The translations under genes were made by a program, and so were the position numbers. Below the pieces are notes generated by a model, which had not been told where the DNA came from, did no database searches, and worked only from the letters and a program-made list of their open reading frames with translations. Below are positions 27,373 through 63,055 of a stretch of DNA of 64,000 bases, in pieces. Every line of letters starts with the position of its first letter. Positions within the stretch are counted from its first letter, which is position 1. Origin of the DNA: Pelomyxa schiedti (taxonomy: Eukaryota; Protista; Evosea); the NCBI GenBank assembly GCA_020536535.1, contig JAHLWZ010000663.1, positions 1 through 64,000 of the forward strand, given 5' to 3'.

Positions 27373-29999
27373 TTAGGCAAGACCCAGGGCCACAAGTTTT
27401 GCATTGGTAGGAATGCCAGTTTCATCCCAGCCGCGCTGCCTGTAATATTCCCCAAGTAACTCCTCCTTGTGCCATGTTTGACCCTAGGAGTCTGGTTAAT
27501 GGCAAGGGTACTAGTAGGAAGGGATACCTTGAAGGAAAGGTCTTGAAGCGGTTCAACCAGCAAACGTTTGGGCAGTGTGTCATCTGCGGGTGTTATGCCT
27601 GCTGCAAGATTGAATTTCTTTTGGGCATTCCATACTCTACAAAGACAAAGTTATGAGTTGTGAGGCCAAACAAATACTTGAAGAAACCTCGCGCCAACTT
27701 CCATGGCAAAAGCATCAGAATTTGGTGTTAGACCTCCTGTGGCAACGTGGGCAAGTTTGGCATATTCCGCAGCTCCAAGAGCAAATGAAGAAAACAGGCA
27801 CATCCCCACAGAGTCAATAAAGGCAGTCAGGTCTTGGAAGGCTATCACTGTGGAAACTTTTGAGCTATCGATGGCTGAGGGGTCCAGTTTTACAGGGCAT
27901 CCAACATGTTCTATTATAAAATTACTACTAGTTTGATACTGGAAGACTGAAAGAAGAATACCAACTGCGGTGGTATATCCATACACGTGGCAACCACCAC
28001 GTACAGACGTAGAATAGTTCAGTCCTGAACTCTAGGTTGAAACGGAAAAATACTGGAACAACAAGTTACCTAAGCCTTGCAGACCACGTGGATCATATGC
28101 AGGGAGTTCTTGACCTTTCACTAACGAAGAGTCATTTTATACAATAGCCAAGAAGGGAAAGCAACCACTCATGGAGAACTCAGGATGCCCATGCTTAGTT
28201 GCGAAGCGCAGTGAGCCCTCAGCAAGATCTGCACCTATACCAGGTTCCATTTTTCCCATTTTGTCGATGTACGTCACAAGACATTCACTGCTCTGCGGGA
28301 GGATTAGGAAAAAGTTGAATAGTTGCAAGTGGGGTGGGTACTCCAAAAACGATGGGCTCTGAAATAATGCCCTTGGCATGAAGCTCCATTGCGCACGAAA
28401 TCGTCCCGCCGGCACTGATTGTGTCAATGCCGTATTCATTGCACAATTGATTTGCTTTGCTAATAGGTGCGAAATCAAAAATACCACCTAGGCGCCATAA
28501 GAGAATATCAAGTAACAATACTACATACAATTGGCACCAAAAGCCCAGGCGGTTTCTGTTGAAAAAAAATTAGATCCTTGGGCACTTTCGCAAGTGAGGT
28601 ACACACCATACTCTGGGCCACTTATTACATGGCCTTCAATCTCAACAACCCTTCCACACCTAATCACACAGTTATTGCATCCCTCTGGATGTCTGAGATA
28701 GTGCTCAGATACAAATTCACCCGTTGTCTTGAACAAGGATTAATTTGGTCACTAAATGGAAAAAAAAAACGCACAGGTTCACAGGTGGTGGGGTCACAAT
28801 GCCCAGATTGAAAGTTGAGGTTGGGGAGAATTCCAGCATCGTTGCAGCCTTTCATAAGTACATTCGTTCCGTGTTGAGTAAGTAATCCACAAACTGCATT
28901 TGCGTGCATCTTTTTAACCATTTCGATATTTGTCTGTGTTGCAATATGAGCAAGGTAAACATAGAAGAATGAGTACTTCTCTAAGCGCCTCAGCATTACT
29001 AGCATTCACAACAGAACCTCCACGACATACAATAGCCTTGAGCATTTTAGAGCCCATTACTGCTCCAATTCCACCTCGACCAGCTGCGTGTTTGATATCA
29101 CTCATAATGCATGCAATTTTGCTATAGTGAAGACAGTTATGCTTGGTAAAAATACCATTCGGTGAACCCAGACCTGAGCTTTTCCCCCCCAGGGCCAATG
29201 CAGGAAATGCTAGTCGCCTTTGGCGCGCCATATCTTGTATGTAATACTTCAAACGTCTTCGATGTGAGTTGACCCCAGATGTCACTTGCACTTACAAGTG
29301 AAGGTCGTTCCCCACCCTATTTGGATTTAAAAAAAAGATCATAGTTGGGAGGTTAACTACCCCAATAACTAGAAGGACAGGAGAGGCAGATTTCCCGGAA
29401 ATGATAATAGCATCATAGCCAGACTTTTTCAGTGTAATACCGAACATTCCACCCATAGAAGTGCTAGAGAGAGTACCAGTCAGTGGACTCTTGCTCACGA
29501 ATGTGCACCGGGCCCCTTTTTGGCTTGTGAGGCATAGAGGCAGAGCAAAAAACGAGGAAAGAATAAAAAAAGGAAAGCCGGTGGGTGAGAGAACCTGTTG
29601 ATACTCCAACGCCTGTGAGAGGTCCAGTTGCTGCCACTAACAAGTTCTCAGGGCTCAACGGGTCCACTCTTGGGTCAACAGACTCTGTTACAATCCTACA
29701 ATTACAGTTAGAAACATACCCACTTCCGTTAGTCTTTTGTAAATGAATTATGCGTAGTAATATTTTTGAAGGTGGAACGTACTTAATTCCCAGCCCCCTG
29801 CCACCAATCCACTTTATTTTGGTTTCATTTAGCAAGGGCTCGTCTACCAGTGTTCCCTATGGCGAATTCGTAAGAAACAAAAAAGAGGAAAGTGAATCCC
29901 TTTAAACCAACTCCACCAAAAAGATTAATATTTCACACATACGGCGGTGAGATCAACTCTCAATATCTTTCCTACGTAAGCGTCGTTGTGGGATGCCAT
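27373..29999 (-). CDS. aor: aldehyde:ferredoxin oxidoreductase (AOR/WOR family), at least a dozen spliceosomal introns
   Basis: Spliced protein: [148 protein letters not shown] and [18 protein letters not shown]. Confidence 0.95.
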
Positions 30000-30074: not shown

Positions 30075-30954
30075 ATGTTGTTGATTTCTTCTTCGATGAA
30101 TCGCACATTCCACGGATTTAAACTCTGATCTGAGATTCAGTGTACTACCACTCTGGCCGCATCACTGAGGTGGTACACGACCAAAGAGGTGTCTGAGCAC
30201 GTCCCCCCCGACGACTGCTGGGTCATTCTCTTTGGGAACGTAATTGACGTCAGTTCCCTGCTCAGCGCCCACGCCTGTACCGCCGACGAACTAGCTCCTC
30301 TTGTGGGTCAGTAGGTTTTTCCCGTTACTTGATATCCCATAACAACTCTGTGCACGTCTACTCAGTGGTGCTTGTATTCCCGCACCCATAAGTCAGACCG
30401 CACACAAACTCACTCCTCCCGAAACCCCAGAGAATGCCGGCCGAGATGTATCGCACTGGTTTGATCCCGACACCCACGACTTGATGTGGTACATGAACCC
30501 AGAGACCGGATCGCGTTCAGTGTGGACGCCCATGGGCAGGTTCCCTCACGTTCCTCCTGAGATTCCACACTCACAGTGGAGAAACGACTTTGATGTACCG
30601 TGGTGGGCAAATGTCAATTTGCGCGTTGGGCGCGTGTCCGATTCCACACTCAAAATTTGCTTGGTCAACACTCTTACTCTGCACAAGAAAATAATGGAGG
30701 TTTTTACCCCTATTATAACAAGCTTACGAATTGTAATACAATACAAGGTTGACCCCATGGAAACACTGGCTGAAATCCGCGCAAGGTGTTACACCTGGAA
30801 TTCCAATGAAGACAACTACACATGGAAGTATCTAGGGGTCCCTCTACACATGTCAGGCACTCTAGGTGCCAATGGCGTGCAGTTTTTGGATGGGGAGACC
30901 CCTTACATTTTCTTGTATTTTAAGGACGGAATCGTAGACGACGAGAAAGACTAA
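30075..30954 (+). CDS. CYB5D1: cytochrome b5 domain-containing protein 1 (axonemal radial-spoke type)
   Basis: WYTTKEVSEH..DCWV, AGRDVSHWFDP, TPMGRFPHVPP, WRNDFDVPWW..VGRVS, INTLT-like LVNTLT, YTWKY and LYFKD. Start codon uncertain (candidate ATGs at 30075 and 30097). Confidence 0.88.
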
Positions 30955-60223: not shown

Positions 60224-60596
60224 TATGTGTCACTAAAAGTAGCAGACAGAGGACATTGCACAATACAGCAGTAGTACTGTAAATGAAAATGAAAAGTACA
60301 GTTTTTCATCAGCGCAAAATAACGACAGTGAACATGAAGATACCCACTGTGGGGGAAAACTAAACTTTGAGGAAGATGTCTGAAGGGAAAAACAATAAAC
60401 TTTGTTTACATTGTATTTAAGGCCAGACAACAAATGAAAAAAGAGGCAACCACCCAAAAGGGGCGAGCACTGCGAGCCGCTTTTGGGTGGGGTCGAAACC
60501 AACAGCAGTGTGCAGGTGGCAGAAATTATTGAGTGCTTAAGTTGTTCCATTGTGGCAGGTTCTTCACCCTCTTTTCCTATGCGTTATTAGGGGGTA

Positions 60597-60696
60597 NNNN
60601 NNNNNNNNNNNNNNNNNNNNNNNNNNNNNNNNNNNNNNNNNNNNNNNNNNNNNNNNNNNNNNNNNNNNNNNNNNNNNNNNNNNNNNNNNNNNNNNN
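60597..60696. other. 100-N scaffold gap
   Basis: Run of exactly 100 n. Confidence 0.99.
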
Positions 60697-60732
60697 GATG
60701 TCATGGACAAAGTTGTATAACCATTACAACAA

Positions 60733-61514: not shown

Positions 61515-63055
61515 ATGCCACCACACGGTGACCATCACAAGGCCATGTTTGAGGAGTTCATGCACGAGGCGGCATCCCACAATCACGATCGCGGGCACGA
61601 CCACGATCACGGCCACGTGCACCCTCACGATCACTCCCATAATAGCGTGGAGTGGGGGCAGCCTAGGGCTTGCCCCAGAGTGCGACCGAGCCCATGGGCC
61701 ACCGTGTGCGTTATGTTGTGCTTGGCGTGGATGTTGTCCTCGCCGTCGCAGTATTATGGGATTGCTCATCCATTGGTACGATGATAGCCGTTGCCGGTTT
61801 TTGATTTTTTTTTTTTTAATTCTGAAAAAAAGCAATTCTAGATACATAAATTTTTTGCTATGCATGAATAACACATCTCCCTCAAGGGAAGGGCCATTTG
61901 TAAAATAGTTATTGTATGTGGCGCCATTGATATTTTGTGCCGGTTGGTTTTATTCAATCCTCTCTATATCATGATTCATCAGGTTCGTTGTTGGAAATTT
62001 ATCTCCTCCTTACCTTTTCACCTAGCTCGTGTACCTCCTATGTAGAGTACCTTATATCAAAATGGTACTTTACATGACCAAATTCCCTATTTTTGCTCGG
62101 TACTGGCACAATGTATATCACTCCAAGCCAGTCACAACTGAACAAGCGAAGGTAATGCGCCTTTGACTAGTCTCAGGAAGCACTCAAACCAAATAAATCT
62201 CTGTAGCAATTCATAACACTTGAGAAAGACCTACCCCGAATTGACCTTGGTGAGAGAATCCTCCCATTCAAAGAGACACGTGAAATAGCACTGAAAGCCA
62301 ATGGGCCAGTAGCCGCAGTCCCTTGTGTTTGCAGAACAATCGGACCAAGAGTTCCTGGAGTTGTGGCCAATTGTGGACCAAAGAACGTAAGGTCATTGCA
62401 CCTATTAACTCATTTTAATGATTGTGTAGGTGTGCCTTATTTTTGGAAAGCTTGCCTCCTTTGCAGTGAAAGGTGGTGGAAAAATACTGTCGAAAGAAGA
62501 GGCCATAGAATTACTTGAAGACCAGCACAGGCGCGGTCACGTTCACAACGTCTATTTCAAGGATATGTTCAATGGGTTTTACGCACTATGTAACTGCTGG
62601 TGAGCCATCTGCAAAGTTTTGCATTCAATAACAGAAATCCAGCAAATGCTGCTGTGGTGGAATAGAGCGAATGAATGTTTCAGGTGGTTCTATGACTAGT
62701 TCTGGGTTTGTCAGTGTGGTGAGTTGAATCACTTATGATATTCCGCATTGTAACCTTCTACAACAGATAGATTCAACCAAATGTTGTGGCTGCGGAACTT
62801 GTGTCAGAACATGCCCCTTTGGAGCAATCGAAATGAAAGATGGAAGGCCTGTTGTTGACAAAGAAAGGTACCCTTACCTATCATTAAGTTATTTATTATT
62901 ATGGTAACACAAACCCGTGTTTTTTTTTACTGTGTAGGTGTCTTGGTTGCACAGCTTGTGATGGGACCTGCCCCAAAAAGGCCATTTCATTTGAGAGAGA
63001 CAAGGACAAACCAGAGCCCTTAGAAATATCCAAACTTGTAGATATGCAGTGGTGA
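61515..63055 (+). CDS. prokaryote-type 4Fe-4S protein (Cys-rich domain + 2x[4Fe-4S] ferredoxin) with His-rich N-terminus, spliced
   Basis: Exons: YHSKPVTTEQAK, ERILPFKETREI, CVCR..C..VCLIFG, LSKEEAIELLEDQHRRGHVHNVYFKD..FYALCNC, CKCCCG, CCGCGTCVRTCPFGAI, CLGCTACDGTCPKKAI..PEPLEI..W*. Splicing of the 5' exons (61770-62030) is unresolved. Confidence 0.85.

Follow-up and report, generated by a model that had tools for sequence, protein, structure and literature searches.

The pterin-dependent enzymes described from eukaryotes belong only to the SO, XO and MOSC families, and the Entamoebidae have lost the use of molybdenum (PMC6147048). No tungsten-containing protein has been identified in any eukaryote (PMC13328260, citing Szaleniec and Heider 2025). 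Characterised members of the family of aldehyde:ferredoxin oxidoreductases (AOR) include those of Pyrococcus furiosus (PDB 1AOR) and of the bacterium Clostridium autoethanogenum (PDB 9G7J). The present report concerns a gene for an enzyme of this type in the amoeba Pelomyxa schiedti, carried on the minus strand of a stretch of DNA of 64,000 nt (assembly GCA_020536535.1, contig JAHLWZ010000663.1, positions 1 to 64,000; hereafter the window). It is likely, in our assessment, that this is a resident Pelomyxa gene that came from an archaeon near the Methanomicrobiales/Methanocellales, gained introns, was duplicated and is maintained by selection, and that its product carries out the cytosolic, ferredoxin-linked aldehyde oxidation predicted for it. 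A preliminary description, made from the letters of the window, had assigned the gene to an anaerobic protist, which P. schiedti is, and had stated that no characterised eukaryotic tungstoenzyme was known; reviews from 2025–2026 say likewise (PMC13328260).

Literature searches on AOR in protists and Archamoebae, and on the molybdenum cofactor (Moco) in Pelomyxa and Mastigamoeba, found no paper on a eukaryotic AOR. The Mastigamoeba genome paper makes no mention of aldehyde, molybdenum or tungsten, and the main text of both Pelomyxa papers (PMC8887013, PMC10579272) none of AOR, tungsten or molybdenum. The protein is already annotated in GenBank, which tempers the novelty of the finding, yet it appears to be undiscussed in the searchable literature. 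New here are the intron map shared between gene copies, the orthologue in Pelomyxa sp. JSP, the approximately unbiased (AU) test against a Methanoregulaceae donor, and the gap in cofactor supply.

The gene was reconstructed by translating the minus strand between 27300 and 30060 in three frames and joining the AOR-like blocks at the GT and AG ends of the stop-rich spacers. The resulting manual splice model occupies positions 27373–29999 and comprises 16 exons and 15 introns, all of them GT-AG, with intron lengths of 86, 87, 79, 44, 52, 43, 47, 51, 41, 49, 45, 45, 51, 51 and 44 nt (range 41–87). The spliced coding sequence (CDS) of 1812 nt specifies 603 amino acids with zero internal stops, starting at the ATG at 29999, the first Met downstream of an in-frame stop, and ending with TAA (27375–27373). 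Every residue is identical to those of GenBank KAH3759801.1, "aldehyde:ferredoxin oxidoreductase [Pelomyxa schiedti]", which was recovered when exon 14 was used to query 1.84 billion protein representatives; most of the other matches were short fragments, and a fragment from Pelomyxa sp. JSP was also found. Intron 8 splits the codon of the catalytic glutamate, E319, leaving G on one side and AA on the other. The GC content is 47.7% in the CDS and 37.4% in the introns. The preliminary description had counted at least a dozen GT-AG introns, had quoted a series of AOR motifs, including CNNCVIRC, DSVGMC, GPEYE, RGGCH and RGWD, and had regarded in-frame stops after splicing as the mark of a false assignment. 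The actual intron count is 15, all of the quoted motifs are present in the spliced open reading frame (ORF), and the 603-residue frame is free of stops. The observation is confirmed and the gene is real.

With the whole protein as query, Pfam returned AFOR_N (PF02730; E 9e-68, residues 10–211) and AFOR_C (PF01314; E 2e-115, residues 227–602). Ten exons queried singly (3–8, 10, 11, 14 and 15) gave collinear matches, running through AFOR_N profile positions 37–198 and then AFOR_C positions 5–346, and because of these single-exon matches, together with the whole-protein E-values, a chance origin of the AOR-like ORF is excluded. The best phmmer match among PDB sequences was P. furiosus AOR (1AOR; E 1e-157, residues 10–603), followed by 9MQX, 9G7J (C. 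autoethanogenum AOR) and 8C0Z (Aromatoleum AorB), with much weaker matches to FOR, WOR5 and BamB. From an alignment of 48 sequences, AlphaFold2 gave a model with a mean predicted local distance difference test (pLDDT) value of 93.5 and a predicted template modelling (pTM) score of 0.94. In Foldseek comparisons the model matched 1AOR with a template modelling (TM) score of 0.96 and a root-mean-square deviation of 1.2 Å, and the TM score was 0.96 to 9G7J and 9MQX as well. By its sequence, the protein belongs to AOR sensu stricto and is a canonical, single-subunit aldehyde:ferredoxin oxidoreductase.

The residues expected of such an enzyme are in place. Alignment with 1AOR equates the P. furiosus cluster ligands C288, C291, C295 and C494 with C295, C298, C302 and C494 of the Pelomyxa protein, positions that are invariant across 48 homologues. 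The second-shell residues named as conserved in AOR are Thr243, Glu313, Tyr427 and His448, plus Tyr312 and Tyr452 (PMC12096430), and all are kept in Pelomyxa, as T248, E319, Y427, H448, Y318 and Y452, respectively. Of 106 alignment columns with conservation of 97% or more among 91 prokaryotic AORs, 100 are unchanged in the window protein. The family is said to carry two pterin-binding motifs of the form DxxGL(C/D)x, a definition that reportedly goes back to Chan and colleagues in 1995. Of these, the second is unaltered in the window protein (D489-SVGM-C494), and the first is N344-EYGI-D349, where Asn replaces the Asp338 of P. furiosus; Asn occupies this position in nine of nine sequences of one alignment and in 90% or more of the 48 sequences of a second, so that by sequence the substitution looks like a clade trait rather than a loss.

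Compared with the P. furiosus enzyme, the Pelomyxa protein is alike in length, in its AFOR_N plus AFOR_C architecture, in the CxxCxxxC and distal Cys ligands and in the conserved residues listed above, with approximately 45–50% identity. It differs in coming from a mesophilic eukaryote, in being encoded with 15 introns and known from the gene, and in three residues: Asp338 is replaced by Asn, as in the sampled methanogen and bacterial clade, Arg182 by His and Lys450 by Tyr. The mesophilic, ferredoxin-linked AOR of C. autoethanogenum, with its high structural match to the Pelomyxa model, shows that the AOR fold works at ambient temperature. It is a bacterial protein, 42% identical to that of Pelomyxa, and falls on the bacterial side of the tree. 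Acetogen AOR also runs in the acid-reducing direction.

P. schiedti carries a second copy of the gene. The paralogue KAH3745497.1 (1019 aa, contig JAHLWZ010000869.1) is 68–70% identical over the AOR part, and when the protein was mapped exactly onto its DNA, each of its 14 annotated introns matched an intron of the window gene in both codon and phase. At the site of window intron 6 (after ...ALRE) the paralogue has a 45-nt in-frame GC..AG stretch (locus L081:5100-5160), which encodes a 15-aa insert (ASSASHLWSFLMACK) in KAH3745497.1 that is missing from every homologue. This is probably an intron of the GC-AG type that was not spliced out of the GenBank model; read as an intron, it means that all 15 positions are common to both copies and that the duplication took place after intron gain. 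The KAH3745497.1 model differs from the window gene in this stretch and in a 404-aa low-complexity N-terminal extension (RGG-, Lys/Glu/Pro/Ser-rich; L081:3001-4212), which shares its exon with the start of the AOR part. The AOR start of this copy is without a Met, and the extension may be either genuine or an artefact of the gene model. Comparison of the two copies gave a dN of 0.25 and saturation at synonymous sites (pS 0.87), from which it follows that the duplication is old and that purifying selection acts on both copies. In Pelomyxa sp. JSP (EukProt EP01106), two Trinity transcripts show 64% and 62% identity to the P. schiedti pair of proteins. The JSP sequence, a partial one of 283 aa, keeps the catalytic, cluster and pterin-motif residues of the C-terminal half. 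A second species thus transcribes the gene, which was present before the two species split. The paralogue and the JSP sequence resemble the window protein in their catalytic residues, and the three Pelomyxa sequences form one clade (100/99).

The best non-Pelomyxa matches among those listed from 5.8 billion proteins were all 47–52% identical, the named ones being Methanoculleus, Methanofollis, Methanocorpusculum, Methanomicrobiaceae and Methanocella. When prokaryotic genomes were scanned at one per species, Methanoculleus, Methanofollis and Methanoregulaceae ranked first, then a Thermococcaceae metagenome-assembled genome (MAG) and many anaerobic bacteria at 43–50%. A quick tree of 97 rows and a careful maximum-likelihood (ML) tree of 50 rows (LG+C20) agree on the placement of Pelomyxa. 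Its clade groups with the Methanomicrobiales/Methanocella AORs (100/99), apart from all bacterial, Thermococcaceae, Thermoplasmatota and Hadarchaeota sequences. Within this group the archaeal sequences are monophyletic without Pelomyxa (97/90), which is sister to all sampled Methanomicrobia AORs. Constraining Pelomyxa to the Methanoregulaceae/Methanocorpusculum subclade cost 33 log-likelihood (lnL) units (AU p 0.03). From the tree and the AU test it follows that the donor was a relative of these methanogens, either unsampled or on their stem, and not the present symbiont Ca. Methanoregula pelomyxae. The preliminary description had proposed an old horizontal acquisition followed by intron gain, to be checked by a phylogeny with prokaryotic AORs. 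The sister relationship just described is the outcome of that phylogeny, and the intron positions common to the paralogues, the orthologue in a second Pelomyxa species and the long stem agree with the proposal.

The nearest relatives, from Methanoculleus, Methanofollis ethanolicus, Methanocorpusculum labreanum, Methanocella and Methanoregulaceae MAGs, share with the Pelomyxa AOR the signatures HVYGY, after the catalytic His, and CN(E/D)xG(L/I)D. Their genes are intronless, whereas the Pelomyxa proteins sit on a long stem with five lineage-specific changes at near-invariant positions. A gene for a Mrp/NUBPL-type Fe-S-transfer P-loop ATPase lies within approximately 2 kb of the AOR gene in both of the two Methanomicrobiales loci examined (approximately 0.45 kb in L001), and a ThiF/MoeB-like gene follows the AOR gene in one of them, L007 (coordinates of the context genes: L001:1645-2547, L007:6807-7643, L007:5131-5862). 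These neighbours may represent a maturation context. Neither of the two loci has a gene for a partner subunit or gives a clear functional clue. Of the two AORs carried by one Methanofollis MAG (L080, L004), one groups with the methanogens and the other falls within a bacterial clade, which means that AOR has crossed between domains on more than one occasion. MAGs labelled as Syntrophomonas and Pelotomaculum (L037, L038) carry identical AOR proteins, the result of a binning error or of a very recent transfer. Other eukaryotic AORs were absent from the best 120 matches listed in two protein searches, one of which used the JSP fragment, and this absence is only suggestive; the JSP search, aimed at fragmentary eukaryotic relatives, listed only Pelomyxa and partial prokaryotic sequences. 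A scan of metagenome contigs with the AOR protein gave 11 loci, all intronless, 42–46% identical and none eukaryote-like.

Two other accounts of the origin of the gene have to be weighed. The P. schiedti genome comes from single-cell assemblies, and the cell is crowded with prokaryotes (PMC8887013, PMC10579272), a setting in which prokaryotic contamination or an assembly chimera could arise. This is excluded because the ORF is broken by spliceosomal introns, one of them inside the catalytic Glu codon, because intron-bearing eukaryotic genes lie on both flanks in a 110-kb contig, and because the GC content (37% in introns, 48% in the CDS) differs from the 54.8% of the methanogen symbiont (PMC10579272). 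P. schiedti genes have 7.4 introns per gene on average, 98.4% of them GT-AG (PMC8887013), and the paralogue with matching intron positions lies on a second contig. The contamination reading is rejected as effectively refuted, and the claim of the preliminary description that this is a resident nuclear gene stands. The other account is that the gene came recently from today's endosymbiont, Ca. Methanoregula pelomyxae, which would agree with the nearest prokaryotic clade being the Methanomicrobiales, the symbiont's own order. Such a transfer is nevertheless highly improbable and is likewise rejected, as the window protein and any methanogen AOR agree at only some 50% of residues, the Pelomyxa clade branches outside the Methanoregulaceae and is sister to the whole archaeal group, and the subclade constraint is disfavoured by the AU test. 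The introns, the old duplication with its saturated synonymous sites and the orthologue in another Pelomyxa species also speak against it, and the published gene list of this symbiont is without an annotated AOR.

The preferred account, of an old archaeal acquisition now resident in the amoeba, leads to a specific prediction of function. An ancestor of Pelomyxa obtained the gene from an archaeon related to the Methanomicrobiales/Methanocellales; the gene later took up its 15 spliceosomal introns and underwent duplication within the amoeba lineage, with the copies kept under purifying selection. The protein is without a presequence, so a cytosolic location is expected. It would bind one [4Fe-4S] cluster through C295, C298, C302 and C494, and a bis-pyranopterin metal cofactor, with tungsten the most likely metal and molybdenum possible. 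Aldehydes from fermentation or amino-acid breakdown would be oxidised to acids at the site formed by E319, H448, Y427 and T248, the electrons passing to ferredoxin. The amoeba has cytosolic PFOR, reduced ferredoxin and eight [FeFe]-hydrogenases, and its methanogen must remove H2 for the amoeba to survive (PMC10579272). Reduced ferredoxin from the AOR reaction could thus be reoxidised by the amoeba hydrogenases, and removal of the resulting H2 by the obligate methanogen symbiont would favour oxidation. Chemically, the enzyme could also run in reverse and reduce acids with reduced ferredoxin.

Several observations weigh against this account. Five of the six changed near-invariant positions are common to the paralogue, namely N184S, R188H (P. 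furiosus R182; window 29088–29090), N253K, A440S and L459V, and in Pelomyxa sp. JSP L459V is also present and A440 unchanged. The arginine lost at position 188 corresponds to a residue that we take to be a possible cofactor contact in P. furiosus. A transcript of this exact copy was not found, the exact protein being carried by one genomic contig only, and the Pelomyxa stem is long (0.5–0.8 changes per site), which may distort the placement in the tree. The published metabolic table of P. schiedti (PMC10579272), a map-based curated selection, contains no MoaA, MoaC, MoaD, MoaE, MoeA or MogA, and no AORs. The preliminary description suggested that the gene implies tungstate uptake and tungsten-cofactor assembly by the eukaryote, which the published table, selective as it is and without the core genes of pterin synthesis, does not show.

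The same table (PMC10579272 supplement) does list FdhF (KAH3761291.1), four XDH, a Moco sulfurase (ABA3) and a MobA-like Moco guanylyltransferase. Both prokaryotic symbionts live free in the amoeba cytosol (PMC10579272). Ca. Methanoregula pelomyxae has moaA/C/D, moeA/B and modA, and Ca. Syntrophus pelomyxae carries moaA/C, mogA, moeA and tupA/B along with an AOR pseudogene that is split (CSYNP_03194/03195). The moa and moe genes are expressed in both symbionts, and tupA and tupB in the latter. The pterin cofactor could come from a pathway of the amoeba, from the cytosolic symbionts or from prey, alternatives that are offered as a lead and not as a finding; supply by symbionts or prey is a live one because the amoeba table is without pterin-synthesis genes and both symbionts have them. 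In its strongest form, this idea holds that archaeal-type bis-pterin enzymes (AOR with its paralogues, and FdhF) operate in the amoeba cytosol with a cofactor obtained from cytosolic prokaryotes or prey and not made by the amoeba. We regard that as speculative and rather unlikely; if true, it would be the first eukaryotic tungstoenzyme together with cross-domain cofactor provisioning inside one cell.

The identity of the metal bears on two further alternatives. The protein might have the same fold and reaction with bis-Mo-molybdopterin instead of tungsten, like YdhV of Escherichia coli. YdhV-type members bind molybdenum in organisms without TupABC (PMC13328260), and the P. schiedti table lists enzymes of molybdenum metabolism (xanthine dehydrogenases, FdhF and Moco sulfurase) and no tungstate transporter. 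The window protein, however, belongs to AOR sensu stricto, its closest structures being 1AOR, 9G7J, 9MQX and 8C0Z, a type treated as obligately tungsten-dependent (PMC12096430), while YdhV falls in another clade, the membrane-linked Class V, and tupA and tupB are expressed by one of the cytosolic symbionts. A molybdenum enzyme is an unlikely candidate. It is considerably less likely that the protein has been kept but is no longer a pterin enzyme, having become a protein with Fe-S alone, one that binds or stores cofactor, or one with a new role. The missing Moa, MoeA and MogA entries would fit such a change, as would the five near-invariant sites altered in both copies, R188H among them. Against it, the catalytic, cluster and pterin-motif residues are kept in both P. 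schiedti copies and in the C-terminal half of the JSP protein after long divergence, the XDH, FdhF, ABA3 and MobA-like entries show that the cell evidently handles pterin cofactors, and the amoeba table, being a map-based selection, is not exhaustive.

The features of the gene are collected in Table 1. On the 109,911-bp contig, its neighbours encode NOG1 (692 aa), a cytochrome-b5 protein (205 aa) and a PAS/guanylate cyclase (1609 aa), and ORF fragments of NOG1, the cyclase and a LUC7-like protein seen in the window agree with the called neighbours. The cytochrome-b5-domain gene (205 aa; window 30075–30954, plus strand) is arranged head to head with the AOR gene, approximately 75–130 bp from the AOR start codon. 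Farther along, at 61515–63055 (plus strand), the window contains a gene interrupted by introns, whose N-terminus is rich in His (…HDHDHGHVHPHDHSH…) and which has Cys-rich, Fe-S-like exons, and a run of N at approximately 60590–60700 (X in every frame) marks an assembly gap.

Table 1. Position of the AOR gene of P. schiedti and its exons in the window, with the residues and motifs that each exon encodes (Pf, P. furiosus AOR).
Feature	Position	Strand	Remarks
Whole AOR gene, KAH3759801.1	27373..29999	-	16 exons, 15 GT-AG introns, 603 aa, TAA 27375-27373
Exon 1	29943..29999	-	M1-A19; N-terminus aligns directly with archaeal N-termini
Exon 2	29783..29856	-	Splice model
Exon 3	29595..29695	-	AFOR_N, DPLSPEN...GPLTG
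Exon 4	29361..29515	-	AFOR_N; R80, equivalent to Pf R76
Exon 5	29174..29316	-	AFOR_N
Exon 6	28977..29121	-	End of AFOR_N; HAAGRGG; H188 replaces an Arg conserved in at least 97% (Pf R182)
Exon 7	28775..28933	-	Start of AFOR_C; T248, equivalent to Pf T243
Exon 8	28607..28727	-	4Fe-4S ligands C295, C298, C302; E317, Y318; base 1 of the E319 codon
Exon 9, 27-nt micro-exon	28529..28555	-	Completes catalytic E319; TAWAFGAN
Exon 10	28342..28487	-	First pterin motif NEYGIDT; N344, D349
Exon 11	28166..28292	-	Splice model, Pfam match
Exon 12	28070..28120	-	Y427 in LPAYDPRG
Exon 13	27962..28024	-	RGGCH; H448, Y452
Exon 14	27688..27910	-	Second pterin motif DSVGMC; D489; fourth cluster ligand C494
Exon 15	27528..27636	-	Splice model, Pfam match
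Exon 16	27373..27483	-	YYRQRGWD tail and stop codon

The picture that emerges is of an ordinary-looking AOR in an extraordinary host. With its intact AOR family under selection, a culturable anaerobic amoeba offers a candidate that can be tested as the first tungstoenzyme of a eukaryote, and a methanogen-like donor joins the known sources of the transferred genes that have shaped anaerobic protists. The family also raises the questions of how a eukaryote obtains tungstate and a bis-pterin cofactor, whether obligate cytosolic symbionts supply them, and whether ferredoxin-linked aldehyde oxidation may feed the H2 flux behind the partnership of Pelomyxa with its methanogen.

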